From Hamiltosporidium tvaerminnensis FI-OER-3-3 (Eukaryota > Fungi > Microsporidia), in the NCBI GenBank assembly GCA_022605425.2, contig CM061256.1, positions 1-64,000 on the forward strand: a stretch of DNA of 64,000 nucleotides, given 5' to 3'. Of the stretch, positions 1-61,225 are shown one piece after another (position 1 is the stretch's first letter; each line of letters starts with the position of its first letter). The notes below the pieces were generated by a model that saw nothing but the letters and a program-made list of their open reading frames with translations, was not told the DNA's origin and did not search any database. Made by a program: the position numbers and the translations under genes.

Positions 1-1037
1 CCTAACCCTAACCCTAACCCTAACCCTAACCCTAACCCTAACCCTAACCCTAACCCTAACCCTAACCCTAACCCTAACCCTAACCCTAACCCTAACCCTA
101 ACCCTAACCCTAACCCTAACCCTAACCCTAACCCTAACCCTAACCCTAACCCTAACCCTAACCCTAACCCTAACCCTAACCCTAACCCTAACCCTAACCC
201 TAACCCTAACCCTAACCCTAACCCTAACCCTAACCCTAACCCTAACCCTAACCCTAACCCTAACCCTAACCCTAACCCTAACCCTAACCCTAACCCTAAC
301 CCTAACCCTAACCCTAACCCTAACCCTAACCCTAACCCTAACCCTAACCCTAACCCTAACCCTAACCCTAACCCTAACCCTAACCCTAACCCTAACCCTA
401 ACCCTAACCCTAACCCTAACCCTAACCCTAACCCTAACCCTAACCCTAACCCTAACCCTAACCCTAACCCTAACCCTAACCCTAACCCTAACCCTAACCC
501 TAACCCTAACCCTAACCCTAACCCTAACCCTAACCCTAACCCTAACCCTAACCCTAACCCTAACCCTAACCCTAACCCTAACCCTAACCCTAACCCTAAC
601 CCTAACCCTAACCCTAACCCTAACCCTAACCCTAACCCTAACCCTAACCCTAACCCTAACCCTAACCCTAACCCTAACCCTAACCCTAACCCTAACCCTA
701 ACCCTAACCCTAACCCTAACCCTAACCCTAACCCTAACCCTAACCCTAACCCTAACCCTAACCCTAACCCTAACCCTAACCCTAACCCTAACCCTAACCC
801 TAACCCTAACCCTAACCCTAACCCTAACCCTAACCCTAACCCTAACCCTAACCCTAACCCTAACCCTAACCCTAACCCTAACCCTAACCCTAACCCTAAC
901 CCTAACCCTAACCCTAACCCTAACCCTAACCCTAACCCTAACCCTAACCCTAACCCTAACCCTAACCCTAACCCTAACCCTAACCCTAACCCTAACCCTA
1001 ACCCTAACCCTAACCCTAACCCTAACCCTAACCCTAA
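1..1037. repeat. Telomeric repeat (CCCTAA)n / (TTAGGG)n, ~172 perfect units
   Basis: Uninterrupted CCCTAA array from base 1 to 1037 with the C-rich strand 5', as expected at a left chromosome end. Confidence 0.99.
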
Positions 1038-3339: not shown

Positions 3340-4745
3340 ATATATTTGTATCTATACACGCCATCTTACTTTTCGTAGTTAGATTATGCAGATTGCACTG
3401 TTAGTAAAGCAAAATACATTTACGTCCAGGAAGTAAAAAACGTCTTTATCATGTCCGTAAAGAACTTAGAAAGGTTTGCGTTGTTTTAAGTTTCAAAGCA
3501 AACATATTCTGTTGCAACCCTTGATTGTTTGAAAAAATCTAAAGATGCAACGACCAAAATACCGGCATCCTATATGTTGAAGAACAATAGCAAAACTCAC
3601 CATGCAATGCAAAAAAAATTTTTAAAAATAAAATTCAATTTAGAACACGAAGTCACTAAGAAGAATTAAGCAGAAGCTCAACTTGCAAAACATATAACAA
3701 AATTTAAAAAATAATCTTTCATTCAAAGCAATATAGTGAAAAAAAAATAAGCTTGTGGGTGTCGGCACTCTTCAAATTGGCTATAGAAAAGAAATATTGG
3801 CAGCGTGATAGAGCAATATTCTGCTATATTCAGGATAGAAATGTATTCTAGAAGGCAGATGATCTAAGCCAACATTGTAATATATGTGGTAAATTGTATA
3901 TCATATATCAACTCGATGTGAAGAAAGGCTAGGACAAGGCTGCATCAGACGGCATAATGAAGTGGTTGGATGCCTACACCTTTTCTCTTTTAAATAGATA
4001 TAGATTTAAGTATTCGAAACGAATTTAAAAGGACTCGGAGCAAGGAATTTCTGAAAACACGCTAGCAGTTATAAAAGTTGATACCAGGATACAAACTTGA
4101 GTCGAGATTCGGAATAATAGAACCGACATATATATTTTAGATAAGAAGAAGAATATGATAACAGTCAATGAAGTGGAAATCACTTACCAAGATTCGGTTC
4201 ATATAGTTAAAACTGAAAAACTTAGGAGGTATGACCTGTTAGTTAATGAGAGTTGGCTTCTTTATAAATGTGGTATGGAATTGATTTTTTACGTGCTGAC
4301 TTGGGACAGTATTGTGACAAAATACCATAAATCACATCTTAAAAGACTACAAATACCCATGTGTGCAGAGGCATACATTCAGTCTATAAAACTTAAGAAG
4401 ACAGTCGAAACGATTTCTTTTGATCGACGAAGAGGACTTAAGTCAAGACTAAATGCCGAATAGAGCTGGGAGAGAGCGTCAATGGGTGTTATTATGAGAG
4501 CAGAGATGCATGAGGAACCAACACCCTCTTTAAAAGAAGAGAAGAGAGAGGAAGATGGTGCAAAAAATTTTAAACCAAAAAATAAAGACCCCTTTATTTC
4601 ACAAGGAGGAACCACTTTAGAGGAACCACCAATAACATAAATGAAGAGTCGGATTTTGAAAAAGAAACAACTGTGGTAAAAGAGGTACAAGAAAATGCAT
4701 AAAAATGGTAATTTCTTATTAACCAAGAATTTTATGAATTAAACG
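3340..4745 (+). mobile_element. Decayed 5'-truncated RLE-type (R4/Dong-like) non-LTR retrotransposon
   Basis: Colinear with 58760-60374 (AAAATACATTTACGTCCAGGA; ORF 4155-4463 TEKLRRYDLL..TWD.IVTKYHK..KKTVETISFDRRRGL). Ends in AACCAAGAATTTTATGAATT. Many stops and frameshifts. Confidence 0.92.
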
Positions 4746-6767: not shown

Positions 6768-6982
6768 TATTCTCAATAATACATAATTAAATAATATTCT
6801 ACCTATTTCTCATTTATCAACCATTCGATCTCCATAGTACCCACCATTATTCTCAATAATACATAATTAAATAATATTCTACCTATTTCTCATTTATCAA
6901 CCATTCGATCTCCATAGTACCCACCATTATTCTCAATAATACATAATTAAATAATATTCTACTTATTTCTCATTTATCAACC
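6768..6982. repeat. 80-bp tandem repeat, ~2.7 copies
   Basis: TATTCTCAATAAT recurs at 6768, 6848 and 6928. Confidence 0.9.
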
Positions 6983-7419
6983 ACTTTATCTCAAGGACAC
7001 AACACACATATATCCTCATCAATTTCAAGACACTAAACCAGTATTACAAACCTTCTAAATGAAAAAACAACCATAATTACAACACCATAATAAATATAGC
7101 AATCCTTTCTTCTTAATATTGTTTATATCCACAATTATTTAATTAAAATCCAATTTAATTTTACCATTTGCAGTATCTAATTTAATATTCCTCTATATTG
7201 TAATATTATATCTTACAACCATATTCAATATATAGTTTATTTAAATATTAATTGTAAAATACATTATATATTATCCACATTTTTAATATTCATTTATTCT
7301 ATATTTTTATTTACCAAATCATCATATTTATCATTAAAATACTTATTTTTATTCTTTTTATATCCTTTTACACTTCTTTTTATATTTTTTTTATATTCCT
7401 TACATTCTTTCTTTTATAT

Positions 7420-7765
7420 TCCTTACATTCTTTATTTTATACTCCTTTTATATTCTTATTTTTACTACTCGTGTATTCTCTATATTTACTCACTTTTTAC
7501 TCTTTACATTCTTTCTTTTATACTCCTTTTATATTCTTATTTTTACTACTCGTGTATTCTCTATATTTACTCACTTTTTACTCTTTACATTCTTTATTTT
7601 ATACTCCTTTTATATTCTTATTTTTACTACTCGTGTATTCTCTATATTTACTCACTTTTTACTCTTTACATTCTTTATTTTATACTCCTTTTATACTCTT
7701 TTTTTATTCTTTTTTTACTCATCGTGTATTCTCTATATTTACTCACTTTTTATATTCTTTTATCT
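7420..7765. repeat. 81-bp pyrimidine-rich tandem repeat, ~3.5-4 copies
   Basis: CTCGTGTATTCTC recurs at 7468, 7549 and 7630. It generates the spurious ORF 7471-7770. Confidence 0.9.
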
Positions 7766-8119
7766 TATAGATAATTTATTTAATATATCTTAACTCTATA
7801 AAACCGTTATTAATTAAAAATAAAAATACTTTCAAATATAATATTTGTAATATATACTATTCATATGAATTTAAGAAAAAATAATTTTTAATTTTATTTT
7901 TTATTTAATTATTTTTTTTATTTAATTATTTTTTTTATTTAATTATTTTTTTTTATAACTGAAAAGATTTTTTAATTTATCAAATAAGAATAAAAAATAA
8001 AAAATTAAAAAAATTTTATTCTCATATTGATAACACTATAATATTAATAATACTCAATACCAATATATTAATCTATTAGTAATAACTTACAATACACTAT
8101 TACAAATCTGATGCTATAT

Positions 8120-8390
8120 TAATCCAATCCAATCCAATAATATATTAATCTAATCTAATATAATAATATTAATCTAATAGTATGCTAACACACTCAATAT
8201 AATAATCCATTCATCTATATATCCAATCCAATATAATAATATTAATCTAATGGTATGCTAACACACTCAAATAATAATCCAATCAAATAATATATTCATC
8301 CTATCCAATATAATGATATTAATCTAATGGTATGCTAACACACTCAATATAATAATCCAATCATCTATTAATCCAATCTAATACTCTAAA
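8120..8390. repeat. Imperfect C-rich tandem repeat
   Basis: ATTAATCTAAT(A/G)GTATGCTAACACACTCAA occurs three times, interspersed with AATCC units. Confidence 0.8.
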
Positions 8391-8396
8391 ATTTAC

Positions 8397-8657
8397 TTAA
8401 TCTATTTTTTCTACACGCGGCAAATAGTTTTTATCATCTATTGGCAATTCAAAAACAATATCCTCATATTCTTCTATCTTGATATTTCTATTCTTAATAA
8501 TATTATAATATAATGTTTCTTTATTATTTAAAAAATTTTTGGTTTTATATTTACGTAATAAAATAATTGTTATTGTAAGCACTATTACTGTTAGAAACAT
8601 AAATATGTAAATAATTAATTCTACTGTTATTTTTCTTTTTAGTATTGAAATATTCAT
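8397..8657 (-). CDS. Small single-pass membrane protein, unknown function (86 aa)
   Basis: One strongly hydrophobic segment (LIIYIFMFLTVIVLTITIILL) followed by basic RKYK. CC-type motif (CTACCTTT-ATG) before the start. Flanked by repeat arrays like the neighbouring real genes. Confidence 0.7.
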   Translation of the reverse strand: MNISILKRKITVELIIYIFMFLTVIVLTITIILLRKYKTKNFLNNKETLYYNIIKNRNIKIEEYEDIVFELPIDDKNYLPRVEKID

Positions 8658-8689: not shown

Positions 8690-9770
8690 TGGGTGGTGGG
8701 TGTTGAGGGTATGTTAGAGGGGAGTAGATAGGAGGGTATGTTAGAGGGTGATAATTATATGTTTGAGATAACAGGGTGTTACTAATACCGGTAGTAGATA
8801 AGAGGGTGTTACTTATACCGGTAGTAGATAAGAGGGTGTTACTAATACCGGTAGTAGATAAGAGGGTGTTACTAATAAGTATAATATTTAAAAGGGTGTT
8901 AATTATAGTATTCTTACTAACACCCTTATAATTAGTATACTTATTACTAACACCCTTATAAATACTATAGTTATTACTAACACCCTTTTAAATACTATAG
9001 TTATTACTAACACCCTTATAATTAGTATACTTATTACTAACACCCTTATAAATACTATAGTTATTACTAACACCCTTTTAAATACTATAGTTATTACTAA
9101 CACCCTTTTAAATACTATAGTTATTACTAAAACCCCTTTAATTACTATAGTTATTACTAACACCCTTTTAAATACTATAGTTATTACTAAAACCCCTTTA
9201 ATTACTATAGTTATTACTAACACCCTTTTAAATACTATAGTTATTACTAAAACCCCTTTAATTACTATACTTATTACTAACACCCTTTTAAATACTATAC
9301 TGATTACTAACACTCTTTTAATTACTATACTTATTACTAAAACCCTTTTAAATACTATACTTATTACTAACACCCTTTTAAATACTATACTGATTACTAA
9401 CACTCTTTTAATTACTATACTTATTACTAAAACCCTTTTAAATACTATACTTATTACTAACACCCTTTAAATATTATACTGATTACTAACACTCTTTTAA
9501 TTACTATACTTATTACTAAAACCCTTTTAAATACTATACTTATTACTAACACCCTTTAAATATTATACTTATTGCTAAAACCCTTTTATCTCCTACTCAT
9601 ATAATTAACAACCTCTTATCTACTACTCATATAATTAACATCCTCTACCTACCTCTCTTCTATCATTAACACCCTCTACCTCCATACTGTCATTAACACC
9701 CCACCCTCCCTACTATCATTAACACCCTTCTATCTATTTACCAATCCATATAACTATCACCCCTCTCTCT
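8690..9770. repeat. Bidirectional ~30-bp TAACACCC/GGGTGTTA array
   Basis: GGGTGTTA units at 8690-8901, then >20 units of TAACACCCTTTTA-AATACTATA(G/C)TTATTAC from 8918. Inversion centre at 8892-8927. Confidence 0.95.
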
Positions 9771-9796
9771 TCTTTTTTCTCCTCTTTTTTTCTTTA

Positions 9797-9807
9797 CCCT
9801 TAAAATG
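9797..9807 (+). promoter_or_regulatory. Microsporidian CCC start-proximal motif
   Basis: CCCTTAAA-ATG. Equivalent CCC motifs precede SUI1 (CCCTCTTTAT-ATG), the WOPR gene (CCCTCT-ATG), PHO88 (CCCTCGAA-ATG) and PRE5 (CCCTTAA-ATG). Confidence 0.75.
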
Positions 9808-10239
9808 TCAGAAAGTATTTACCAAGTAACACCAGAATCTTTTATTTCAAACCTTTCTTTACATTTAAAATCAAACCAAATAATAACACAACCACCCAAC
9901 ATATCAATACTTAAGACATCACATGCTAAACAACTACCACCAACAAACACTGATTGGATATTTGTACGTGCCTCTTCTATTATAAGAAGTATGCTTATTA
10001 ATATTTCTTGTTCTAAATACACTTCTATATCTTTACTTGCTAATAAGTATGGATGTTCTAAAAATAGAGGGTGTAGACCTTCTAGAAAGGTACGTGCTAG
10101 TCTTCATCCTATACAGTGGATACTTAAAGATTTGGAAAAGAAAGGATGGGTTGTTAAGTGTGAGAAGGGTAGGACTTTAAGTGAAGAGTGTGTTAAAGAG
10201 ATGGGACAACTTATTGAGAAGATAAAGAATAATGAGTAA
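9805..10239 (+). CDS. RPS19: 40S ribosomal protein S19 (eS19)
   Basis: KTSHAKQLPP..DWIFVRASSIIR, YGCSKNRGCRPS, ILKDLEKKGWV..GRTLS; 144 aa, no intron. Confidence 0.96.
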   Translation: MSESIYQVTPESFISNLSLHLKSNQIITQPPNISILKTSHAKQLPPTNTDWIFVRASSIIRSMLINISCSKYTSISLLANKYGCSKNRGCRPSRKVRASLHPIQWILKDLEKKGWVVKCEKGRTLSEECVKEMGQLIEKIKNNE

Positions 10240-10259
10240 AGTATTAGAGGTATGGATAG

Positions 10260-11260
10260 TATAGGGGTTATAGGGGGTTAGTATAAGGATTATAGGGAGT
10301 TAGATGGTTATAATGTTAGAGGGTTAGGATAAGACTAATTAATAAAGGGGTTTTAATTATAAGACTAATTAATAAAGGGGTTTTAATTATACTACTAATC
10401 AATAAAGGGGTTTTAATAATTGAACTAATTAATAAAAGGGTTTTAATTATTGAACCAATGAATAAAGGGTCTTAATTATACTACTAAGGAATAAAAGGTT
10501 TTAATTATAATACTAATGAATAAAAGGTTTTAATTATAATACTAATGAATAAAGGGGCTTTAATTATTAGACTAATGAATAAAGGGGTTTCAATATTTGG
10601 ACTAATCAATAAAAGGGTTTTAATTATTGAACCAATGAATAAAGGGGCTTTAATTATTAGACTAATGAATAAAGGGGTTTTAATTATTACAGATATTTTA
10701 AAAATTACTTTTATTAAACATTTTTATTCTTAGGTGTTAATTATAAGAGGTGACATTAAAGGGTGTTGTTTATATGAGGAGTTATTAAACGGGTGTTAAT
10801 TTCAAGTATAGTAATAACACCCTTCAAATATTGGTATGCTTAATAACACCCGCTTAATTATAAATACTCTTATAAACACACTCTAATTGACTACTTATAT
10901 CAATAACACCCTTTAATTCACTAATCTTATTACTAACACCCTCTTATTCACACTCATACACATTAACACCCTCTAATTCACACTCATACACATTAACACC
11001 CTGTTATTCACACTCATACACATTAACACCCTGTTATTCACACTCATACACATTAACACCCTGTTATTCACACTCATACACATTAACACCCTGTTATTCA
11101 CACTCATACACATTAACACCCTGTTATTCACACTCATACACATTAACACCCTGTTATTCACACTCATACACATTAACACCCTGTTATCCACTACCTATAC
11201 CAATAACACCCTGTTATTCACACTCATACACATTAACACCCTCTCCTTTATAACACCCGT
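10260..11260. repeat. Bidirectional ~30-bp array between convergent RPS19 and SUI1
   Basis: TAAAGGGGTTTTA units at 10340-10690, inversion at 10791-10822, then ~10 copies of TAACACCCTGTTATTCACACTCATACACAT at 10935-11245. Confidence 0.95.
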
Positions 11261-11264
11261 TCTT

Positions 11265-11534
11265 CTATATCTTCCCATGTGTAACAACACTATACTCACT
11301 AAAATAATTCTTTAGAATATTTTCAATAGAATAAGAAAAATTACCATTAAGTTCTATCGTACCTCCATCTTCTTGTCTAATAGCACCTACACATGACATT
11401 TCTTTCTTAAGTACTCTTAATGTATTCTGTTGTTGTTCTGTTGGAATACCTTTTATTAAAGTTTGTTTTTTATGTTTTTGTTGTCTTGAAGGAACTATCC
11501 AGACTGAAATTACTTTCTCTTCGGCATTTTGCAT
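11265..11534 (-). CDS. SUI1: Translation initiation factor eIF1 / SUI1 family
   Basis: KKQTLIKGIP..LRVLKKEMSCVGAI..GTIELNGN..VVTHG matches the SUI1 pattern. Start moved to ATG 11534 because the track start is TTG and a CCC motif precedes 11534. Confidence 0.88.
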   Translation of the reverse strand: MQNAEEKVISVWIVPSRQQKHKKQTLIKGIPTEQQQNTLRVLKKEMSCVGAIRQEDGGTIELNGNFSYSIENILKNYFSEYSVVTHGKI

Positions 11535-11579
11535 ATAAAGAGGGTTGTTTGTAAACAAATATAAAGGGTAATGTGGGTT

Positions 11580-12400
11580 ATAAGAGTATGGTAGAGGGTG
11601 TTAGTCATATGAGTATGGTAGAGGGGTGTTAGTAATATGAGTATGGTAGAGGGGTGTTAGTCAAATGAGTATGGTAGAGGGGTGTTAGTCAAATGAGTAT
11701 GGTAGAGGGGTGTTAGTAATATGAGTATGGTAGAGGGGTGTTAGTAACAAGGGTAGTAAATAAGAGGGTGTTAATCATAAATGTAGTAAATAAGAGGGTG
11801 TTATATATATGGTATGTCAATTAAAAGGGTGCTAATTACATAGGTTGAAATAAAACTCTGTTAGTAATATAGAGGTAGAATAAAACCCTGTTGGTATCAG
11901 GAGTAGTAAATAAAGGGTGTTAGTATGTGGAGTGTTAGTAAAGGGGTGTTAGTAACACCACTTATAATTAACACCCTGTCGGTAAAAATACATATGATTA
12001 AATCTCTATTAGTAACAAATCTGTAATTAAAACCCTCTTAAATCAAATCTCATTAATTAAGACCCTTTAAATAAAATAAATGTAAATATAACCCGTTAAA
12101 CCAAAACTCTTTAATTAAAACCTCTTAAAACAAAATAATAAACCCCTCTATCACTAACACCCTTCGTATCCCCCTATCTCTATTCCCCAAAATTACTTAT
12201 CACTAACACCCTTCCTATACCCCCTATCTCTACTTATCAATATCTCTATCACTAACACCCTTCCTATACCCCCTATCTCTACTCCTCAAAATTACTTATC
12301 ACTAACACCCTCTGACCTACTATCACTAACACCCTTCCTATCCCCCTTTCCTACTCCCCAAAATTAATTATCACTAACACCCTTCCTATCCCCCTATCTC
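11580..12400. repeat. Bidirectional 28-30-bp array between SUI1 and the WOPR gene
   Basis: GAGTATGGTAGAGGGGTGTTAGT units at 11583-11747, a variable-spacer lattice at 11750-12150, and TATCACTAACACCCTTCCTAT units to 12400. Confidence 0.93.
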
Positions 12401-13410
12401 TAATCTCCAAAATTACTTATTAATACCTCCACTGCAATCTTCTCCAATTCCTTTCTATTCAAACAAGCACAAGTATTTTCCTGTGTAGGTTTACCAAACG
12501 AATAAACATCTTCCATAAAATTACAATTCTCTTCTCTAATCTTACAAACATACGAATCATTTAATAAATTATTATTTTTATTTATCAATTCCCCCAAATT
12601 TATATAAAAAGGTATTTTACTCAACGAATATTTAGCAAACACAGGTTGAAAATAAGAAATTATGTGATAAATTTCATTACCAAACGGAACAGAAATCGTT
12701 TTTTTATAAAAAGTAAAAATATCATTATTTTTATAAAAAGATCTATTTAGAGACACCAAAGTGACAGCAAGTGATTCATCAGTATTTGTATTTGGATTAT
12801 TTTTTGTATTTGGATTATTATTATTTGTATTGGTATTTGATTTATTATCTTCATTCTTACCTCTATTCTTAGATTCATCTTTATTATATTTACTATTCTC
12901 ATTCTTATTCTCATCTTTATTATATTTACTATTCTCATTCTTATCTTCATTCTTATTCTCATCTTTACTATATTTATTATTCTCTTTCTCATATTTCTCA
13001 TCTTTACCATTCTTATTATTCTCATATTTCTCATTCTCATCTCTATTATTCTCATCTCTATTATTCTCATATTTCTCATCTCTATTATTCTCATTCTCAC
13101 TTATATCAGATATACTGCTATAAATACTACTGTTATACTTTTTAAGTCCTGTTTTACTGAGATGTTGTGGTACTTCTTTATACATTAAAAACTTACCAAC
13201 AATCATACTTGGTGACCATATTTTACCATCTGTCCATCTTTTAATACCACTTTTACTTTCTACAAAGCAATATATACATCCACTTCGTATTTCTTTTCTT
13301 TCAGAAATAGAAAGTCTTGATTTAGTTATTGGTAATAATCCTAAACGTATACCATGTACTATAAGAAGTGCTTCTTCGTAATCTGTGATGTAACCACGTA
13401 TTATTTTCAT
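12400..13410 (-). CDS. WOPR-domain (Gti1/Pac2, Wor1/Ryp1-like) transcription factor
   Basis: WOPRa: GYI....EALLIV..RLGLLP..RLS..ER..IRSGCIYCF.E..SGIKRWTDGKIWSPS..G.FLMYKE. WOPRb: FYKKTISV....IYHIISYF. The two are separated by an N/E/K/D low-complexity linker. Confidence 0.95.
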   Translation of the reverse strand: MKIIRGYITDYEEALLIVHGIRLGLLPITKSRLSISERKEIRSGCIYCFVESKSGIKRWTDGKIWSPSMIVGKFLMYKEVPQHLSKTGLKKYNSSIYSSISDISENENNRDEKYENNRDENNRDENEKYENNKNGKDEKYEKENNKYSKDENKNEDKNENSKYNKDENKNENSKYNKDESKNRGKNEDNKSNTNTNNNNPNTKNNPNTNTDESLAVTLVSLNRSFYKNNDIFTFYKKTISVPFGNEIYHIISYFQPVFAKYSLSKIPFYINLGELINKNNNLLNDSYVCKIREENCNFMEDVYSFGKPTQENTCACLNRKELEKIAVEVLISNFGD

Positions 13411-13906
13411 AGAGGGATTTTTTGTTTTAGAGTTTTTTTTTTAAATTTTTTTTTTATTTTTTTTTAAGTTAAAAATTAAATAGAGTTATTTTTTAAGTAT
13501 AACGGTAAAAGAAGAGGTAAATTGAAAAAAAAATATTGTTATTGAGTAAGGAGGGGTAATATTAATTTTAGAATATAATATAATTTTATGAAGTATAGTA
13601 ATATAATTTTTTGATATATAGTAATTTTAGAATATAATATAATTTTATGAAGTATAGTAATATTGATTTTAGAATGTAAAATGTAATAATAATGTAAAGT
13701 AATGGAGTAATATAATTTTATGATGTAAAGTAAGAAGTAATATAATTTTATGATGTAATAGAATAAAAAGTAATAGTACTATATAATACTATACTAGAAT
13801 ACTATACTATATAATACTTTGCTAGAATAAAGTATTTGATTTTAATATATTTTAGATTTTATATTTATTTTTTTAAAAATATCTTTTTTTTGATTAGAAG
13901 ATGTCT

Positions 13907-14130
13907 GATTTTTTTAGATTTTATTAAAAGAATAATAGAAATGTATTTTAAAAAGAGATTTTAATAAAATAATAGATTAATAGAAGAATTAATAGATTTT
14001 TTTAGATTTTATTAAAAGAATAATAGAAATGTATTTTAAAAAGAGATTTTAATAAAATAATAGATTAATAGAAGAATTAATAGATTTTTTTAGATTTTAT
14101 TAAAAGAATAATAGAAATGTATTTTAAAGC
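13907..14130. repeat. 88-bp AT-rich tandem repeat, ~2.4 copies
   Basis: TAGATTTTATTAAAAG recurs at 13915, 14003 and 14091. Confidence 0.85.
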
Positions 14131-14492
14131 GAGATTTTAATAGAATAATAGAAATGTATTTTAAATAGAATTAATAAAAATGTATTAAAAATAGAATTAA
14201 AAATAGAATTAATATAAATCAATAATATAAATCGAGATTTTAATAGAATAATAGAAATGTATTTTAAATAGAATTAAAAATAGAATTAATATAAATCAAT
14301 TTTAAAAAGAATTATTTTAAAAGAATTAATAGAAAAATAAAAGAATTTTTAAAAGAATTAATAGAATAATAAAAAGATATTAAAAATAGAATTAATAGAA
14401 AGATAAAAGAATTATTTTAATAGAATAAAAGATATTTTTAAGTTTCTTTATAGTTTCTTTAAGAATATTAAATTATTATATTTACTTAATAA

Positions 14493-14632
14493 AGAGATAT
14501 TATGGAGATATTATAGAGATATTATAGAGATATTATAGAGATATTATATAGAGATATTATAGAGATATTATAGAGATATTAAAGAGATATTATAGAGATA
14601 TTATAGAGATATTATAGAGATATTATAGAGAG
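14493..14632. repeat. 11-bp minisatellite (AGAGATATTAT) x ~12
   Basis: Read directly from the sequence. Confidence 0.92.
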
Positions 14633-15034
14633 TTATAATTATTTAAAAAGTTATAATTATTTAAAAAGTTAGTAAGAGATAAGAAAGTTAGTAATAAGTT
14701 TTACTTAGATATAAGTATAGATATAAGTATAGGTAGATTATATAATTTATATTTAAGAAGTGTATTTATAAGATTTTATGGTTTAATAGTAGATTTAAAT
14801 AAAATATAAAATATTTATAAAGAAAAGATTTTTAGTAGAAATTTTAATATAATTATAGGTTTAATGTAAAGAAGTATTTAAATTCTAATTAAAATATTAT
14901 TTATTAAGAAATTCTTATTTTTTTTAATAAATGTGTAAAGTATTTGTGTTTATGATTTTAGTGGTAATTAAAAAGAAAAAAATATTTGGAAATAATTTCT
15001 TTTTTATAAATATTCCTAGTCTTTATTTAAAAGT

Positions 15035-15755
15035 ATTACATCTATTTTAAAACAGTGGCAAGTGTTATATTTGTTTTCATGACATTAACGCAGTTCTAGG
15101 TTTAACATAAATGACTATTCTTAACATTTCATCGGTAACCCCTGTGATACCTACGTACCAAAGCCTTTCATCTACCAGGTGTGTAGAACCTAATTACTAG
15201 GCGAGGCAGTTGCCCGGAGTTCGTTAGTGCCGGTTGCATGGAGTGTGATTGAAGGTCGAAGCCCCCCCTGGGCTCCCCCAAGACTATGCAGCCTTCCCAC
15301 TTACTCTACACTTTCTGAACCCAATAAACTTCTAGCTAAGATATATTTCAGAGATTTACATGGGGTCCACCTAGACAGTGCAATGTCATACCAACAGGTA
15401 TAACCTGCTACTTAGCTCTCCCGGCTTTTAATGGGTTTTATTTTTATATATCCCAGGCGCTAAGTCTTCTAACCCGAGTGAGCAAGGCTAGGTTTCCATG
15501 CTTTTACATGGCAATTACCTACATGTTCAGCTGCGGTCTGCAATCTGGTTACATAAAAAACTACAAATAAATTCGTAGAAAAAGTTTCTCTATTTCGTAG
15601 ACCTCTCCTCTTCATAACAACTCTCATGGAACAACCGAAGATATAGTGTGGTTGTATTCCCACCAAAAATCCAAACAATGATCTCACACCAGTTTCACAC
15701 ACTCATTGCCAAGCAGAAAGTTTTTTATGTGGTTATCCTCCCTCCACCATTCAAA
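15035..15755 (-). other. ~720-bp GC-enriched, hairpin-rich dispersed non-coding element (best-preserved copy; strand is nominal)
   Basis: Sharp GC island with many local stems and no credible ORF. Diverged colinear copies occur elsewhere in the window. Confidence 0.75.
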
Positions 15756-16039
15756 TGTATTTTATAAAATATTATTTTTTAATGAAAAATTATTTTACAA
15801 TTATATTTTAACTTTTTAAATTATACTTTGATTAAATATATAATATAATACAGTTCAGAAGAAGTGATTTACTTTAAAAACTATATATTTAGCCTTTGTT
15901 TGGGTGAAAAAGACGTGTAAATTTTATTTTTAAATTTGAGGTGAAATAGAGGGCACCGTGTATTTTACTGCCCGGTGTGAATTATTATATAAGTGGAAAA
16001 CAAAAAATAGTAACATTTTTTACAAGATTATTTTAAATT

Positions 16040-16772: not shown

Positions 16773-18038
16773 TCATAAGGAGGCCATAATTTCTTTCATA
16801 TATTTACCGATTGTTTCTTCGTATTCATAACTAGCAAGAAGATCCCGAAAAACAAATCTCTCTTTAGTTATTTTCACTATCTTTGTTATTATCAAATCTT
16901 TATCAGATAATATTTCGAACTCTACTGCATCGTTAGAGGTAAAAGAACAAATCAAACCATATTTTCTCGTGTTTTCATTTGATTCCTTGAGAAAGAATTG
17001 AACTGAATATGGCAATCTTTGCCAGCTTAAATGTATTTTAATTTCTCTCCTATAACCCGGGGATCCAATCAATCCATCCGTAGAAAATTTACATTTACTT
17101 GAATATTCTTGTATAGATAGTAATTCAGTATTCAAAATGTTTTTTTCATTAAATAATTCTTGAATTTTTTCAGTAACGAATGTTTTTAAATTGCATTGTC
17201 TTTCATATTCACCTTCAACAAAACCATTCTCAAATCTCCAGGCAGCTTTTATTTTATAATTTGCTTTTAATGTCGAAAACAAGTTAAAACTTTTCTTTAA
17301 ATTTGCATCCAGATCATTTATAGGTTGAAATCCAGGCAATTTCCCGGATAATTTAATCTTAGTAGATAACACGGGTTTAAAGCGACCTAACAATAAACTA
17401 GCATGACCCATCAGGCTTTTATTCGGTAAATCGACAATATTTTTAAAACAAAATTCAGAATCAAATATCATAAACCTATAATTGGCATAGCTGTATTTAT
17501 AATAAAAGCCAGTCGTTCTAATTGAATCAGGATAATATTTTCTGAATACTAGGCTTAAATTAAATAAAAAACCCAGTAGAATTCTTATTGCCTTGTTTTT
17601 TAAAAATATGTGTTTTTCTTTGATCGTGCCGGTCTTATTCTCTTTATTTTTATATTTTATTCCGAACATAAAATCATTATTTTCAAGCTTATTAAGAGTA
17701 AAGAAATATATATTATCTGGAATAGATCTTGCTCGTTGTTTACAACAAATATATTCTAGAAATATATTGAAATTTCTTGAAGCGGATGAATTTATATAAT
17801 TACATACAAGGTGATTCATTTCAGGAGAAAGTATAGGTTTCTCTAGCTTTATATCATAAAAATCGGAATTAGAAAACCTTCTCATAGTTTTTTCTTTCCA
17901 TTCATAAATTTCTTTTAATGATTCTGTGAGCTTTTCATTTAAATCATCAACAGTGTATAAATTTCCCTTCAGCAAAAACATAAATAACAAATTAAAAACA
18001 GGAAAGTATGTTCGCAATTTCTTAATGAATAATAGCAT
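16773..18038 (-). CDS. Subtelomeric multigene family member 1 (intact, putatively secreted, ~421 aa)
   Basis: Family motifs FSNSDFYDI.L, YRFMIFDSEFCF, TKIKLSGKLP, YKIKAAWRF. Start set at MLLFIKK (18038) by alignment with paralogue starts and the shared promoter. Confidence 0.88.
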   Translation of the reverse strand: MLLFIKKLRTYFPVFNLLFMFLLKGNLYTVDDLNEKLTESLKEIYEWKEKTMRRFSNSDFYDIKLEKPILSPEMNHLVCNYINSSASRNFNIFLEYICCKQRARSIPDNIYFFTLNKLENNDFMFGIKYKNKENKTGTIKEKHIFLKNKAIRILLGFLFNLSLVFRKYYPDSIRTTGFYYKYSYANYRFMIFDSEFCFKNIVDLPNKSLMGHASLLLGRFKPVLSTKIKLSGKLPGFQPINDLDANLKKSFNLFSTLKANYKIKAAWRFENGFVEGEYERQCNLKTFVTEKIQELFNEKNILNTELLSIQEYSSKCKFSTDGLIGSPGYRREIKIHLSWQRLPYSVQFFLKESNENTRKYGLICSFTSNDAVEFEILSDKDLIITKIVKITKERFVFRDLLASYEYEETIGKYMKEIMASL

Positions 18039-18254
18039 AATGATGGAAACCGAATTTTTTAAATACTTATAAAACATAATTTAATCAGATAAAATCAAAG
18101 AATTAAATAGACAAATTAAATAAATTAATTAAAAAAGTTGTAATTTTTGGTAAATAGTTCATTTATGTTCGATTATTGGAAATTTTTATCTGTGTAAATA
18201 GATTAAATTACATTACTTTAAAAATTTCTGGAACAATACAAAAATAATTTGTTA

Positions 18255-38791: not shown

Positions 38792-40078
38792 TTAAAGATT
38801 CAAATTATTCTCACCGCATATTAGTTCTTCGAAAATCCGCATGATTATAATATCATGGTCTGTAGGTTCATAATAATTTTGACGAGAAGATCTCGTTTTG
38901 AAATTTTTCACGATGTCAATTATGTTCAACTTATTGTCAGATACAACTTCGCATTCTAATTCATAATTTTCGAAAATATTAAAAACTAAAGTATATTTTC
39001 TTGTAAATTCATCACATTCATTGAGAACAAATTGAACAGAATATGAAAATTTTTGCCAATTAAAATGTACTTGAAATTCTCTTTCAAAAACCGGCAGTGC
39101 ACTTGAATCGCTCGAATCACCTGAAGTAAATTTAAAACTACTTATATATTCTTTGATAGACAAGAATTCGGAATTCAATATGTTATAATTATTAAACAAT
39201 AATTGAATTTTTCTTGTATAGAATGTCGTTAAATTAAATTTTTTTTCATGTTCACTTTCTAAAGAATTATTCGCAAATCTCCAAGCTGCTTTAATTCTAT
39301 ATTTTCCTTTCAATGTGGAAAACATATTAAAACTTTTCTTAAAAATTAAATCCACATCATTCATAGGATGGGATACAGGCAATTTACCAGATACTTTAAG
39401 TTTAGTAGAAAACACATTTTTCTCGTGTCTTATGAAATATGCAGGACTTATCAGGCGTTTATTAGGTAAAGCAATAATATTCTCAAAACAAAATTCAGAG
39501 TCAAATATCATAAATCTATAACTATCAAAGCTATATTTATAAGATAAACCAGTACTTCCAATTAAATCAGGATATAATTTTCTAAAAATCAAGCTTACAC
39601 TAAATAAACAATTTAGAAGATATTTTAAAGATTTGTTTCCCCAAACTTTAGGTATTTTCTTGCCTGGTAAAGACACATCCTCATTATTTTTATATTTAAT
39701 TCCGAACAAAAAACTATTGTTTTTAAGTTTGCTAAGAGTAAAAAAATATGTATTATTTGGAACGTATGTTGCTCTATACTTATTACAAACATATTCTAGA
39801 AATATATTGAATTTTTTTGTTACAGATGAAGTTATATAATCGCAAATAAGTTGATTCATTTCAGAAGAAAGAGTAGGGGTTTCTAGCTCAATATCGTAGA
39901 AGTCGGAATCAGAAAAACTTCTTAGTGTTTTTTCTTTGCATCTATAAATTTTTTCGGTCATTTGCATAAGCTTTTCATTTAAATCATTAACAGTGTATGA
40001 AATTCCATTCAGCAAAAACATAACTAATAAATTAAAAATATAAATGTATGTTCGCGATTTCTCAATGAATAATACCAT
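38792..40078 (-). CDS. Family member 4 (intact, 428 aa)
   Basis: Same motifs and length as member 1; N-terminal basic plus hydrophobic segment. Confidence 0.9.
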   Translation of the reverse strand: MVLFIEKSRTYIYIFNLLVMFLLNGISYTVNDLNEKLMQMTEKIYRCKEKTLRSFSDSDFYDIELETPTLSSEMNQLICDYITSSVTKKFNIFLEYVCNKYRATYVPNNTYFFTLSKLKNNSFLFGIKYKNNEDVSLPGKKIPKVWGNKSLKYLLNCLFSVSLIFRKLYPDLIGSTGLSYKYSFDSYRFMIFDSEFCFENIIALPNKRLISPAYFIRHEKNVFSTKLKVSGKLPVSHPMNDVDLIFKKSFNMFSTLKGKYRIKAAWRFANNSLESEHEKKFNLTTFYTRKIQLLFNNYNILNSEFLSIKEYISSFKFTSGDSSDSSALPVFEREFQVHFNWQKFSYSVQFVLNECDEFTRKYTLVFNIFENYELECEVVSDNKLNIIDIVKNFKTRSSRQNYYEPTDHDIIIMRIFEELICGENNLNL

Positions 40079-43947: not shown

Positions 43948-45279
43948 TTACCAGTAGATAATTGCTAATTTATCCATTAGCATTCGCCGGTATAACTCTT
44001 TACATAAATTCTTTACAAAATATTCATATTGATACACAGAAGAATTCTCAAGCGGGAAATTATAGAAAAATTTTTCAAATTTTGCTACCTTATCAACCAT
44101 GTTTGTTACGTTTAAATTATAATCTGATAATATTTCAAAGAATTCATCGCTTGAAAAGAGAGAAAAATTTAACGAGAATTTTTTTTCAAATTGTGTATGT
44201 TCTTTAAGAAACAATGTGAAGACGTAGGGTTTTTTGTGTAGGCTAAAATCAATTCTTATTTCTTTTCTAAAATTTAAAGATTCTATTGGAGCATCGTAAG
44301 TGGCCTTATATTCAATAAAATATTCGTTTTTTATCAAGTTCGAACTTAATGAATCATTATTACAGTTGTCACTAAATTCCTTTATACAATCAGTTCTGAA
44401 GGTTATAATAGAATAAAAACTATGTAGCAAATTGGATGTATTATAATCAATGTCTTCTTTATATATATTTCTACACCTCCAACAGGCTTTTATACTGTAC
44501 TCTTGGTTTAATTGCTGGAAAATTTTGCACTTTTCTTTCAGTATTAAATTTAAATCCTGAGCATCAGAAATGACTGGTAATTTCCCGGATAGTTTTAGCT
44601 TGGTTGCTACCGTCGATTTAAAAGCAATTACATTCTTAGAGGAATAAAAAGCCAATCTTTTATTTGGTAATCCAATGACGTGTTCGAATGAAATCTCGGG
44701 ATCAAAAATTATAAACCTATAGTTTGAATGACTATATCTGCAAGAACTCACTAATCCTCCCATCAGATTGATATAAAATTTTCGAAATATTAATGTTGTA
44801 TTAAAAATATTTTTCAAAAGATGCTTTAAAAATTTGTTTCCAAAAACGATATGTCTTTGTCGGTAACAAAGTTCCTTGTTATTCCTATCAATAGATTTGA
44901 TTTCGAAAAAAAAATTTCCTTTTCCTATTTTTCGTAATTCTAACAGATGTAAAATATCTGGATTTTTTTTCGATCTTACGATTTTACAATCTGAATCAAA
45001 AAAAATATTAAAATTTGTAGAAGTGGATGAATTAACAAAATTACAAATAGCTTCATTTATTTCAGGAGCTAAATGACGCTCTTGAAGTTTAACATCATAG
45101 AAATCGGAATCTGCGAATTTTTTCAATATTTCTTTGGTTTTTACATAAAAAAAATTTGCAACATGAGTAAGCTGTTCATCAAAATCACATACTGTATATT
45201 TATCATCATTTGTTGTCAACATTGTAGACATATAAAATATCAACATTAAAATTTGTAGCTTTCCGATCCATAGATCCAT
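43948..45279 (-). CDS. Family member 5 (intact, 443 aa)
   Basis: FADSDFYDVKL, YRFIIFDPEISF, TKLKLSGKLP, YSIKACWR; hydrophobic N-terminus. Confidence 0.9.
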   Translation of the reverse strand: MDLWIGKLQILMLIFYMSTMLTTNDDKYTVCDFDEQLTHVANFFYVKTKEILKKFADSDFYDVKLQERHLAPEINEAICNFVNSSTSTNFNIFFDSDCKIVRSKKNPDILHLLELRKIGKGNFFFEIKSIDRNNKELCYRQRHIVFGNKFLKHLLKNIFNTTLIFRKFYINLMGGLVSSCRYSHSNYRFIIFDPEISFEHVIGLPNKRLAFYSSKNVIAFKSTVATKLKLSGKLPVISDAQDLNLILKEKCKIFQQLNQEYSIKACWRCRNIYKEDIDYNTSNLLHSFYSIITFRTDCIKEFSDNCNNDSLSSNLIKNEYFIEYKATYDAPIESLNFRKEIRIDFSLHKKPYVFTLFLKEHTQFEKKFSLNFSLFSSDEFFEILSDYNLNVTNMVDKVAKFEKFFYNFPLENSSVYQYEYFVKNLCKELYRRMLMDKLAIIYW

Positions 45280-57400: not shown

Positions 57401-57607
57401 AAGCATCTTTTTCAAATTAATAATAATCAACTTAAAAATAGAATATTTGTAAAAAAAGTAGTTTCTTTCTTATTTACTAATCATCAAATTTCTTTAATTT
57501 TTCTATTTTTACTTATATTTCTCACATTTAATATTTCTGGAAAAATATTTTATTTATTTAAATTTTGGCGTAAGACCTCTTATTTAGTAATATTAACTAT
57601 CTCATAA

Positions 57608-57972
57608 ATAACACCCTTATAATTACAATCACTGTTACTAAGCTCGCTTTAACCCAACACCTCTTTTAACTAACACCCCTTTAATATACTTTGACTACCC
57701 TATATATTAACACCCCCTCCCACCCCTCTACCACTCTAACCAACACCCCTTTAATATACTTTAATTACCTTTATTATTAACAACCCCTCTTTACGCCAAC
57801 ACCCCTTTAATTACTACCCTTATTATCACTACCCCTTTAATATACTTTAATTACCCCTTATATTAACACCCCTCTTTACGCCAACACCCCCTTAATTACT
57901 ACCCTTATTATCACTACCTTTATTATTAACACCCCCTCCCACCCCTCTACCACTCTAACCCAACACCCCTCA
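57608..57972. repeat. C-rich (T/C)AACACCC array upstream of PHO88
   Basis: About 11 AACACCC cores with internal duplications. Confidence 0.88.
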
Positions 57973-58014
57973 ATATTTTTAAATTATAAAATTTTAAAAA
58001 TTTTAACCCTCGAA

Positions 58015-60374: not shown

Positions 60375-60607
60375 ATTTCTAATCTTTAAGTTTTTTAAAT
60401 ATTTTTCTGGTTTTTTTATTTACTTTTTGTTTATTAATTCTTCTTTCTTATTCTCTCTTATTTTAATTTGCTCTTTTTAGTATTTTATTTTTATTTATTT
60501 TTTTTAATTTCTTTTTTTTTGTTTAATAACTCTACTCCTCTAATATTTCTTAATTTTAATTTACACATGTTTTAAATACATCTCTAAAATTTCATTAATT
60601 TTTTAAA

Positions 60608-61225
60608 TATTTACTCATCTTTAAACTCCCTCTCTCTTTTTTTTACTATTTCTTAATTTCAATATTTTATTTTAGTTTTTACTATTTACTCATCTTTAAA
60701 CTCCCTCTCTCTTTTTTTTACTATTTCTTAATTTCAATATTTTATTTTAGTTTTTACTATTTACTCATCTTTAAACTCCCTCTCTCTTTTTTTTACTATT
60801 TTTTAATTTCAATATTTTATTTTATTTTTTAATGTTTTTTACTATTTACTCATCTTTAAACTCCCTCTCTCTTTTTTTTACTATTTCTTAATTTCAATAT
60901 TTTATTTTAGTTTTTACTATTTACTCATCTTTAAACTCCCTCTCTCTTTTTTTTACTATTTTTTAATTTCAATATTTTATTTTATTTTTTAATGTTTTTT
61001 ACTATTTACTCATCTTTAAACTCCCTCTCTCTTTTTTTTACTATTTCTTAATTTCAATATTTTATTTTATTTTTTAATGTTTTTTACTATTTACTCATCT
61101 TTAAACTCCCTCTCTCTTTTTTTTACTATTTCTTAATTTCAATATTTTATTTTATTTTTTAATGTTTTTTACTATTTACTCAGCTTTTACATATTTTTTA
61201 CTATTTACTCCCTCCCTCTCTCTTT
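60608..61225. repeat. ~75/85-bp pyrimidine-rich tandem repeat x ~7-8
   Basis: TATTTACTCATCTTTAAACTCCCTCTCTC recurs with two unit lengths. Confidence 0.92.

Follow-up and report, generated by a model that had tools for sequence, protein, structure and literature searches.

Strand-locked minisatellites with a CCC-box-like core around conserved genes of Hamiltosporidium tvaerminnensis

Introduction

Why does a short C-rich motif recur about every 30 bp through the intergenic DNA near the end of a microsporidian chromosome? The question is raised by the window analyzed here, the first 64 kb of Hamiltosporidium tvaerminnensis chromosome CM061256.1, which opens on a (TTAGGG)n telomere. TTAGGG is the telomere unit of H. 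tvaerminnensis (PMC10542269), and the contig's own telomere sets what "telomere-like" means for this species. The original prediction for this locus described a phased lattice of pseudo-palindromic, telomere-like cores read by a dimeric protein. The observation behind it is partly confirmed, and the structure is real and oddly ordered. Its interpretation is partly supported, in that the core behaves as if constrained. The closest known element to the core is the microsporidian CCC box, which the prediction had overlooked.

Array layout and gene context

The heptamer AACACCC occurs 70 times in the 64 kb against 2.54 expected, a count that 0 of 100 shuffles reached, and 56 of the 70 occurrences fall in 8690-12400. 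Distances between same-strand neighbors in the window show sharp maxima, 36 cases at 30 bp and 5 cases at 28 bp. The predicted recurrence of the core about every 30 bp thus holds, and the TRF calls concur independently, with a period of 30 at 8766-8877, 8914-9588, 10332-10689, and 10875-11244, of 28 at 11580-11747, and of 29 at 12020-12135. The arrays are no assembly artifact, because a short-read assembly of the same strain is identical to window positions 9031-14040 save for one base. The individual arms and the genes between them are listed in Table 1.

Table 1. Coordinates of the arrays, genes, and start-proximal boxes in the window
Feature	Position	Strand	Details
Telomere (CCTAAC)n = (TTAGGG)n	1..1037	+	172.8 copies (TRF)
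Minimal arrangement by ORF 4155-4463	4484..4526		GGGTGTT 21 bp past stop, AACACCC 36 bp further
86-aa ORF	8397..8657	-	Hydrophobic N-terminus
Arm 1L, 5' flank of 86-aa ORF	8690..8910	-	TAACACCC cores (minus) at 8698, 8774, 8804, 8834, 8864, 8894; includes 3.7 homogenized 30-bp units, 8766-8877 (TRF)
Arm 1R, 5' flank of eS19	8914..9792	+	~29 units, plus-strand core; 60- and 90-bp higher-order repeats with variants TAAAACCC and TAACACTC; diverged units 9576-9760
eS19 start-proximal CCC box	9793..9804	+	TTTACCCTTAAA, abuts ATG, T-rich run before
Ribosomal protein eS19 gene	9805..10239	+	PF01090, 2.7e-34
Arm 2L, 3' flank of eS19	10245..10805	-	G-type on plus strand; 22-bp repeats at 10257-10303; twelve 30-bp units, 10332-10689, minus-strand variant core TAAAACCC(C); three diverged units, 10732-10797
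Arm 2R, 3' flank of SUI1	10815..11262	+	Diverged units 10815-10934, then ~10 homogenized with TGTTA arm
SUI1/eIF1 gene	11265..11558	-	PF01253; ATG at 11534, CCC box just upstream of ATG
Arm 3L, 5' flank of SUI1	11560..11955	-	Minus-strand cores; six 28-bp units at 11580-11747, then diverged 30-bp units to 11950
Arm 3R, 3' flank of Gti1/Pac2	11969..12399	+	Diverged 29-30-bp units with degenerate cores, 11969-12140; then 48-50-bp units from 12149; TRF repeats traced to 12420, 21 bp inside the 3' end of the Gti1/Pac2 ORF
Gti1/Pac2-family gene	12400..13410	-	PF09729, 2.1e-37
Same-core array, 5' flank of Pho88	57600..57970	+	Sense orientation; 9 exact AACACCC; irregular spacing; 85-86-bp higher-order unit; single arm
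Pho88 AAATTT-like signal and CCC box before ATG	57989..58014	+	AAATTTTAACCCTCGAA

The flanking genes had been taken as housekeeping, which fits the translation genes eS19 and SUI1 but is not obviously so for Gti1/Pac2 and the 86-aa ORF. The current assembly annotation carries no SUI1 call, and Hamiltosporidium annotation is sparse. Alternative genetic codes were considered as an account of the scarcity of long ORFs and set aside; the sequence agrees with the standard code, and genes are genuinely sparse. A search of the window for RNA genes gave neither an Rfam family nor a tRNA.

Arrays with the same core are absent at 15-57 kb and 64-83 kb; the chromosome was followed to 83 kb with no arrays past 58 kb, although 64-83 kb holds few genes and is therefore a poor sample. 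A search for further arrays through their spurious ORF product gave no matches, and a paralogue search with a 428-aa family returned three proteins only, all from this region, reaching no other chromosome. Many other strand-asymmetric minisatellites, which lack the core, lie close by at 6768-8383, 13417-14732, and 60411-61187.

An asymmetric core and its conservation

The part of the unit that is conserved is an asymmetric core of 8-9 bp, TAACACCC(T), and not the 13-bp pseudo-palindrome first described. A TGTTA arm is present in 9 of 70 units, and perfect pseudo-palindromic arms are found in 15 of 70, in 2 of 26 distinct 13-mers, and essentially in one amplified array. The motif is also strictly locked to one strand relative to the genes (see below), which argues for an asymmetric site over a dimeric one. 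The resemblance to telomeric DNA is weak as well. In the 3.7-kb region there are 18 telomeric hexamer matches, at least 8 telomeric bases are found at one site only, and the full hexamer occurs in a minority of the ~69 units, mostly in variants bearing AACCCT. Comparable sites are those of general regulatory factors at yeast ribosomal-protein promoters, with the 13-mer consensus ACACCCRYACAYM for Rap1, TTACCCG for Reb1, and TTAGGG for Tbf1, and the plant telo-box. Like the core, these sites are short, C-rich, and oriented, and they precede genes of the translation machinery; some are related to telomere repeats, and some also serve to block polymerases as roadblock terminators or to mark boundaries. 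In contrast, their full consensuses are absent from the core, and they number one or two per promoter and do not form 30-bp arrays. The Rap1-type 13-mer has no exact match in the window, and its nine one-mismatch matches all lie in the amplified spacer of array 2R.

The period itself gives no more comfort to a lattice of three helical turns kept by selection. A spacing of 28-30 bp is common but not uniform, with 48-50 bp in arm 3R, 26-35 bp in promoter-proximal units, and 17-67 bp upstream of Pho88. Tandem duplication of one ancestral unit gives the 28-30-bp period, and selection on helical phase is unsupported. The original model of a helically phased, palindromic lattice bound by a dimeric Myb/telobox (Tbf1-/Rap1-like) protein that would serve as nucleosome organizer, insulator, or origin is consistent with the conserved core, the common 30-bp period, a weak TAAnA...TnTTA symmetry in the consensus, and the AACCCT (one telomere unit) of some variant units. 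We nevertheless judge it very improbable in view of the strand lock, the near confinement of perfect arms to one amplified array, the lack of the full telomere hexamer in most units and of the Rap1-type 13-mer in the core, and a period that varies (26-35, 49, irregular) where arrays are old or of another subfamily.

Constraint on the core is better supported. Within arrays, the mismatch to the array consensus is about 4 times lower in the core (7/304, 2.3%) than in spacers (78/824, 9.5%), and between species the core columns upstream of Pho88 are identical at 55 of 56 positions versus 199 of 236 for the other array columns (p=0.003), in statistics that treat related units as independent and for arrays that were partly recognized through the core, so that decayed relatives (e.g., 7342-7759, 60601-61161) are under-counted. 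The predicted slower divergence of the core between species therefore stands at Pho88 but not at the eS19 locus, where 3 of 19 substitutions fall in cores versus ~5 expected and the sparing is not significant.

One minisatellite family

The arrays had been regarded as separate, with unrelated spacers, and simple slippage had been dismissed as a cause. Neither view survives comparison of the units. The consensus units of eleven TRF arrays share 90% identity in the 8-bp core and still share 53% outside it (33% expected by chance), and arms show 71-82% complementarity over stretches of 73-139 nt, both inside a region and from one region to another, which together indicate a single diverged 30-bp minisatellite family and not independent lattices. 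At the array centers 10730-10935 and 11750-12150, cores or one-mismatch cores do succeed one another at 29-31 bp, with spacers that are non-identical. Homogenized blocks, as in arms 1L and 2R, and 60/90-bp higher-order repeats speak for ongoing unequal exchange. The units run head to tail (TRF), and copy number changes in whole units relative to H. magnivora, with differences of +148 bp, -180 bp, and -29 bp; within one H. tvaerminnensis strain, the two assemblies agree. Broken cores have been copied along with intact ones: TAACACTC was co-amplified three times in 90-bp higher-order repeats and TAAAACCC many times. Broken cores that co-amplify and copy numbers that differ between sister species mean that unequal exchange is clearly at work. 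Ordinary minisatellites likewise have 28-30-bp head-to-tail units, are homogenized locally, form higher-order repeats of 60/90 bp, and vary in copy number among closely related species; those discussed here differ in that their orientation relative to genes is strict, that every intergenic region has a dyad switch, and that the core varies less than the rest. A CRISPR-like array was also considered and rejected, with a eukaryotic chromosome, a conserved part of only 8-9 bp (versus repeats of at least 23 bp), and homologous spacers.

These properties could be all there is to explain. The arrays may be minisatellites with no role at all. A 30-bp unit rich in pyrimidines would have spread and expanded under weak selection, and its core, read by nothing, would be only the most recognizable part, held by recent common descent, homogenization, or GC-biased conversion. 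The membership of all arrays in one family with copy-number change and higher-order repeats, the propagation of broken cores, the lack of significant core sparing at eS19, and the core-less minisatellites close by all favor this reading, as does the non-adaptive expansion reported to have shaped the genus (PMC6944219). A metagenome scan for three phased cores points the same way, with more than 120 matches, every one an unrelated tandem repeat (linkers rich in TP within coding sequence, a 27-bp satellite of one sample group, telomere-like satellites). One of the matching contigs (L015) has a similar G-arm/C-arm dyad but is bacterial. Phased cores alone therefore prove nothing, and a naive chance estimate for them is wrong. 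Against a neutral origin stand the fourfold lower variability of the core within arrays and its better preservation between species at Pho88. At a genome GC content of 25%, a C-run should be the first part to erode, but no other part of the unit has been kept so well. Together with the strand lock in every arm and a single-copy match at a distant relative's SUI1 promoter (both discussed below), these points make the purely neutral reading unlikely, though it deserves to be taken seriously.

Orientation relative to genes

A feature absent from the original prediction is that the motif flips strand midway in each intergenic region, with sharp switches at 8901-8917, 10798-10814, and 11951-11968. 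On the sense strand of each gene, the motif appears as TAACACCC on the 5' side and as GGGTGTTA on the 3' side. Two inverted arms that meet mid-region thus give every gene a C-strand motif on its 5' side and a G-strand motif on its 3' side. Sense-strand C/G counts over 300 bp are 83/23, 94/2, 101/8, and 46/1 in the 5' flanks versus 11/56, 12/63, 9/104, and 2/115 in the 3' flanks, and the rule holds in 8 of 8 arms. GGGTGTTA stands 6-21 bp past the stop codons of SUI1, Gti1, and the ORF at 4155-4463.

This geometry would suit a polar boundary or terminator, in which the site would halt polymerases that exit a gene in either direction, either through a bound factor or in the nascent RNA as GGGUGUUA. 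Both 3' read-through and upstream antisense transcription would be stopped, and each intergenic region would act as a two-sided trap insulating its neighbors, with opposed batteries of putative CCC-box-factor sites that would bracket each gene and would have evolved in a lineage with poor transcription termination. Opposed polar replication-fork barriers follow the same logic as such a "transcription trap". A polymerase leaving any gene from either side meets the G-orientation first, copies lie just past three stop codons, and the convergent 3'-3' region is filled with arrays; transcription overrun is documented in microsporidia (PMC2803860), and in a distant relative sense-strand G-runs follow the eS19 stop. 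The geometry is, however, symmetric under reverse complement, so a promoter reading fits it equally. The conserved copies in that relative lie upstream of genes and not downstream, and no termination factor is known for the motif. We consider the terminator reading improbable.

Inverted arms also invite comparison with foldback elements, whose inverted arms are built of subrepeats, and each intergenic block might be an inserted mobile element or a source of hairpin RNA. The likeness extends to ~30-bp tandem subrepeats in inverted arms that meet within 16 nt, and to hairpin capacity; the strand of 8769-9046 folds as a long hairpin (-54.3 kcal/mol, z = -7.4). However, hallmarks of mobility are missing, with neither a target-site duplication nor a transposase seen, and no dispersed identical copy in 83 kb. 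On either side the arms run up to coding sequence, they are unequal in length (5 versus 29 units in region 1) and belong to different subfamilies, and the Pho88 array has one arm only. Foldback insertion is the least probable of the readings considered here.

The CCC box and a single-copy precedent

The CCC-like start motif of microsporidia is a cytosine triplet with a purine 5' and a pyrimidine 3', present in single copy at most about 15 bp from the start codon, with a T-rich or AAATTT-like signal directly upstream of the triplet (Cornman et al. 2009, PMC2685015; Peyretaillade et al. 2009, PMC2803860; Heinz et al. 2012, PMC3486916). Genes in the window carry this canonical box, with R-CCC-Y 3-12 bp before the ATG of eS19, SUI1, Gti1, Pho88, and a proteasome subunit, and the proximal 14-mer of Pho88 recurs base for base before eS19 in another microsporidian (L010). 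ACCCT is part of the array core and, in all four 5' arms, has the sense orientation of the CCC box; among 48 non-redundant units an A precedes CCC in 96% and a T follows it in 73%. The arrayed core differs from the published motif in that it is an extended 8-9-mer present in up to ~29 copies, and in that it lies 40-900 bp upstream of the ATG and also, inverted, in 3' flanks. The proximal boxes of eS19 and Pho88 have their T-rich or AAATTT-like signal; within units, TTTTAAAT stands after the triplet and not before it. The units almost never contain a strict TATA box, and on this ground the idea that each is a complete core promoter combining TATA and CCC was rejected. To our knowledge, microsporidia have no regulatory signal in common other than the CCC box, and we know of no factor that reads it.

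A precedent for a lone upstream copy comes from one 3.2-kb contig (L009) of a distant microsporidian, whose eS19 is 42% identical and which has the same convergent eS19-SUI1 pair and no arrays. This contig carries the 16-mer ATAACACCCTTTAATT, equal to window positions 10902-10917, in sense orientation 145-160 bp upstream of SUI1; a shared 16-mer arose in 2 of 500 shuffles. A similar site lies 85-105 bp upstream of a second gene. Constraint on the core and this 16-mer upstream of the relative's SUI1 make a sequence-specific reader plausible, as had been predicted, though a dimeric or palindromic mode is not supported. At three more distant eS19 loci (L010, L131, L132) the canonical CCC box stands by itself, and neither an extended core nor an array accompanies it. 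A metagenome scan for the palindrome-flanked element of L009 found nothing in a collection that itself lacks the L009 contig.

A proposed origin

We put at about even the chance that the arrays go back to an ancestral CCC-type site upstream of a gene, which unequal exchange multiplied in a genome that had expanded. The core TAACACCC(T) would be a long form of the CCC box, an asymmetric putative factor site that stood as a single upstream copy before there were arrays. A ~30-bp module with this core would then have been multiplied by unequal exchange or slippage in the Hamiltosporidium genome, which has expanded under weak selection, and the resulting minisatellites would have come to fill the DNA between the members of a conserved gene cluster. 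The core may have been kept by selection on the site, or may simply have decayed more slowly, while spacers drifted and homogenized locally, and the 28-30-bp period would be carried over from the ancestral unit. We infer a protein reader for the site and a role for the 5' arms as promoter or boundary elements with many sites each; the mirrored 3' arms would for the most part be a side effect of arrays that grew as palindromes. Against this origin stand the arrays in the convergent 3'-3' eS19/SUI1 region, where no promoter is needed, the co-amplified broken cores, the nonsignificant sparing at the eS19 locus, the near lack of TATA boxes in the units, the stretches at 15-57 kb and 64-83 kb that hold no arrays, and the lack of an extended core near eS19 in more distant microsporidia.

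A parallel to an origin from an upstream CCC-type site is found in the intergenic spacers of rDNA, whose promoter-derived arrays (spacer promoters, enhancer repeats) serve Pol I in one orientation and have a function shown experimentally. In both cases a short module that copies part of the gene's own promoter would be tandemly amplified through the intergenic spacer, but the arrays described here flank protein-coding genes and have mirrored arms.

Outlook

The strand-lock rule could help to predict gene boundaries and strand in Hamiltosporidium. If the core is an extended CCC box, the arrays are natural site multimers and would make ideal bait for a DNA-affinity pull-down; if the boundary reading is true, they would offer dozens of natural tandem sites for purifying the CCC-box binding protein. 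Should the arrays instead be neutral, they would provide a clean example of a constrained core within a freely evolving minisatellite. The single-copy form in a compact relative may complete a before-and-after pair for what becomes of regulatory DNA when a reduced genome expands again.

Structure and Origin of the Arrays

The DNA examined here comes from Hamiltosporidium tvaerminnensis FI-OER-3-3, a microsporidian parasite of Daphnia magna with a TTAGGG telomere (PMC10542269); exact protein matches put the window at CM061256.1 1-64000 in GCA_022605425.2. A telomere of this type, 172.8 CCTAAC copies long (TRF), opens the window. Outside the telomere, G+C content in the window is 23-31%, and the recognizable genes encode eS19, SUI1/eIF1, a Gti1/Pac2-family protein, Pho88, and a proteasome alpha subunit, with microsporidian ribosomes and the microsporidian proteasome as the nearest solved structures. 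SUI1/eIF1 is uncalled at this locus in the current assembly and was called in older ones. The Gti1/Pac2 ORF contains tandem repeats of period 12-78 bp that encode a low-complexity insertion of the protein. A ~700-bp island, bordered on one side by the G-type repeats upstream of Gti1 and on the other by AT-rich DNA, has G+C far above its surroundings and no long ORF; no Rfam family and no tRNA were found in it.

Features of the window and of the contigs compared with it
Feature	Position	Remark
Miniature array	4484-4526	one motif per orientation
Core-less minisatellites	6768-8383; 13417-14732; 60411-61187	strongly strand-asymmetric, nearly no G or nearly no C on one strand
Hairpin fold	8769-9046	z = -7.4
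Strand flips	8901-8917; 10798-10814; 11951-11968	one per intergenic region
Match to L002	9031-14040	identical apart from 13417 (A vs T)
Match to L003	9380-12330	eS19-Gti1 region, only ~1-2% divergence
eS19 gene	9805-10239	plus strand
16-mer shared with L009	10902-10917	ATAACACCCTTTAATT
SUI1/eIF1 gene	11265-11558	minus strand
Gti1/Pac2 tandem repeats	12782-13100	within ORF
(AGAGATATTAT)x12.5	14493-14631	core-less minisatellite
G+C island	15050-15760
~430-aa paralogues	16773-18077; 38792-40078; 43948-45279	all minus strand
Match to L008 560-1400	57200-58030	H. magnivora, noncoding DNA upstream of Pho88, ~16% divergence
Third AACACCC of L009	L009 1243-1260	plus strand, in ACACCCATACACC
G-type then C-type repeats	L015 1195-1470	bacterial contig

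The heptamer AACACCC occurs 70 times in the window against 2.54 expected, with 56 of the 70 copies within 8690-12400. Neighbors on the same strand lie 30 bp apart in 36 cases and 28 bp apart in 5, and TRF reports seven arrays of period 28-30 across three intergenic regions plus one 49-bp array. These counts, the spacing peak, TRF, and L002, an older short-read assembly of the same strain, all agree with the original prediction of a core recurring at ~30 bp in three intergenic regions. Assembly error does not account for the arrays, since L002 equals 9031-14040 of the window in all but one base; the sole differing base falls within the Gti1/Pac2 CCC box. The predicted persistence of core and period in diverged array centers was also borne out, as older, nonhomogenized stretches still carry the core or a one-mismatch core every 29-31 bp.

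Other parts of that description have to be revised. When eleven TRF consensus units were oriented to the C-strand, rotated into register, and compared, identity was 90% in the 8-bp core and 53% elsewhere, where 33% is expected from composition, and arms taken from separate regions show 71-82% complementarity over 73-139 nt. The arrays had been taken as separate, with unrelated spacers; by these comparisons they are a single family of diverged 30-bp minisatellites. What is conserved in the unit is TAACACCC, mostly followed by T, rather than a palindromic 13-mer, since the TGTTA arm is essentially confined to one amplified array. The proposed telomere likeness is weak, most units having no complete telomere hexamer. 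A constant period of ~30 bp describes most arrays (28-30 bp) but not the stretch near the eS19 start (26-35 bp), the one beside Gti1 (48-50 bp), or the irregular array upstream of Pho88; the 30-bp period is that of the ancestral unit. Nor are the arrays general intergenic filler: in the 83 kb of chromosome covered, they fill three neighboring regions at 8.7-12.4 kb and one site upstream of Pho88 at 57.6-58.0 kb, with a miniature nearer the telomere, and are absent from the gene-poor 15-57 kb and from 64-83 kb. A full-text literature search returned no description of them, nor do the two publications on the H. tvaerminnensis assembly contain one.

Three phased copies of the 8-mer were found in >120 metagenome contigs, all unrelated tandem repeats, and phased cores per se are therefore a trivial by-product of tandem duplication; information lies only in unit-to-unit differences and in orientation. 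Among these contigs, a 27-bp satellite consisting of TAACACCC and a conserved 19-20-bp spacer with a GAGGCATAAGTCGGT end recurs in L011, L024, L028, L034, L038, and ~30 further loci from one group of metagenome samples, and is unrelated to the Hamiltosporidium arrays. In the bacterial contig L015, a run of G-type TAGGGAGTAA-like repeats leads straight into C-type ones with TAACACCC; the repeat dyad resembles the Hamiltosporidium arms in form only and is unrelated. The contig also has a hairpin terminator and an ORF of the four-helix-bundle type. In Hamiltosporidium itself, tandem amplification with continuing unequal exchange is evident from homogenized blocks, from higher-order repeats, and from indels of whole units that distinguish the species.

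Possible Constraint on the Core

Core and spacer divergence were compared within arrays and between species, with the proviso that related units are not independent and core-less arrays are harder to recognize. In four homogenized arrays, mismatches to the array consensus affect 7/304 core cells and 78/824 spacer cells. Upstream of Pho88, core columns are identical between H. tvaerminnensis and H. magnivora in 55/56 cases vs 199/236 for other array columns (p=0.003). The eS19 protein sequence recurs unchanged on short contigs from L002 and from two isolates of H. magnivora (L003 and L004). At this locus, far less diverged than the Pho88 upstream region, 3 of the 19 between-species substitutions in nonhomogenized DNA fall in cores vs ~5 expected, which is not significant; all three abolish the C-triplet. 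The expected slower divergence of the core thus holds within arrays and at Pho88 but not significantly at eS19. Between-species divergence is very uneven overall, and upstream of Pho88 the two species sharply regain identity over the final 150 bp ahead of the ATG. Broken-core units have been amplified together with intact ones, and a purely neutral satellite is an explanation that we consider unlikely while taking it seriously. Taken together, these alignments depict a core that is slower-evolving but not untouchable, and its retention in a 25%-GC genome is at least notable.

Strand Lock and the CCC Box

The original prediction overlooked that the strand flips in the middle of each of the three intergenic regions, so that the plus strand reads GGGTGTTA in the left half and TAACACCC in the right half. 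Therefore all 5′ flanks are C-type on the sense strand of the gene (C/G counts over 300 bp of 83/23, 94/2, 101/8, and 46/1), and the corresponding 3′ flanks are all G-type (11/56, 12/63, 9/104, and 2/115), a rule valid for genes of both strands. The long hairpin fold in the first region is expected because the arms are inverted. Strand-asymmetric minisatellites free of TAACACCC keep the same rule; they include an 85-bp unit repeated seven times, and some of their units, such as AAACTCCCTCT, resemble decayed core relatives.

Being symmetric under reverse complement, the orientation rule cannot alone tell whether the 5′ or the 3′ relation matters. A polar terminator or boundary system is attractive because GGGTGTTA lies within 6-21 bp after the stop codons of three genes and microsporidia are prone to transcriptional overrun (PMC2803860), and we judge it improbable. 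On the 5′ side, microsporidia have in common a CCC motif that lies on the sense strand, no more than ~15 bp from the start codon, and is composed of a purine, a cytosine triplet, and a pyrimidine, often after a T-run or an AAATTT-like signal (PMC2685015, PMC2803860, PMC3486916). Conserved genes of the window carry exactly such a box before the ATG, for example TTTACCCTTAAA at eS19 and AAATTTTAACCCTCGAA at Pho88, and the eS19 promoter of L010, a more distant microsporidian, has a 14-mer identical to that of Pho88. In each of the four 5′ arms the array core includes ACCCT, with the same sense orientation as the box; a putative tandemly repeated, extended CCC box is therefore the best description of the lattice. 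Strict TATA boxes are nearly absent, which rules out the units as complete core promoters. Three paralogous ORFs of ~430 aa, at 53% and 36% identity, have hydrophobic N-termini, no Pfam domain, and database relatives from Hamiltosporidium only; they share a conserved sequence upstream of the ATG that has no CCC box.

Comparison with distant microsporidia suggests that the extended site may be older than the arrays and formerly single-copy, on the strength of one contig, L009. The nearest eS19 relative in an exhaustive profile search is only 42% identical. It is encoded on L009, a 3.2-kb metagenome contig of 41% G+C, where eS19 and SUI1 are still a convergent pair; 410 bp separate the two genes, and the contig has no arrays. 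Its 16-mer identical to the window lies 145-160 bp upstream of the SUI1 start in sense orientation; a 16-mer in common with the arrays turned up in only 2/500 Markov shuffles of L009. A second similar site, with core AACAACCC, precedes the other gene on the contig by 85-105 bp, and both share a palindromic CCATAA/TTATGG frame. The third AACACCC, in sense orientation at 343 bp from eS19 on its upstream side, is part of a sequence that exactly matches the yeast Rap1-type consensus, ACACCCRYACAYM; it overlaps a called 80-aa ORF that is probably spurious. L010, L131, and L132, more distant still, have a short proximal CCC box only.

The arrays are a genuine structure with more order than first described, yet of a more ordinary kind than proposed, namely strand-locked minisatellites apparently made of an extended form of a known promoter motif. 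The mirrored 3′ arms may have arisen by palindromic growth of the arrays. The extended CCC box would be read by an asymmetric factor, and the 5′ arms may serve as multi-site promoter or boundary elements.
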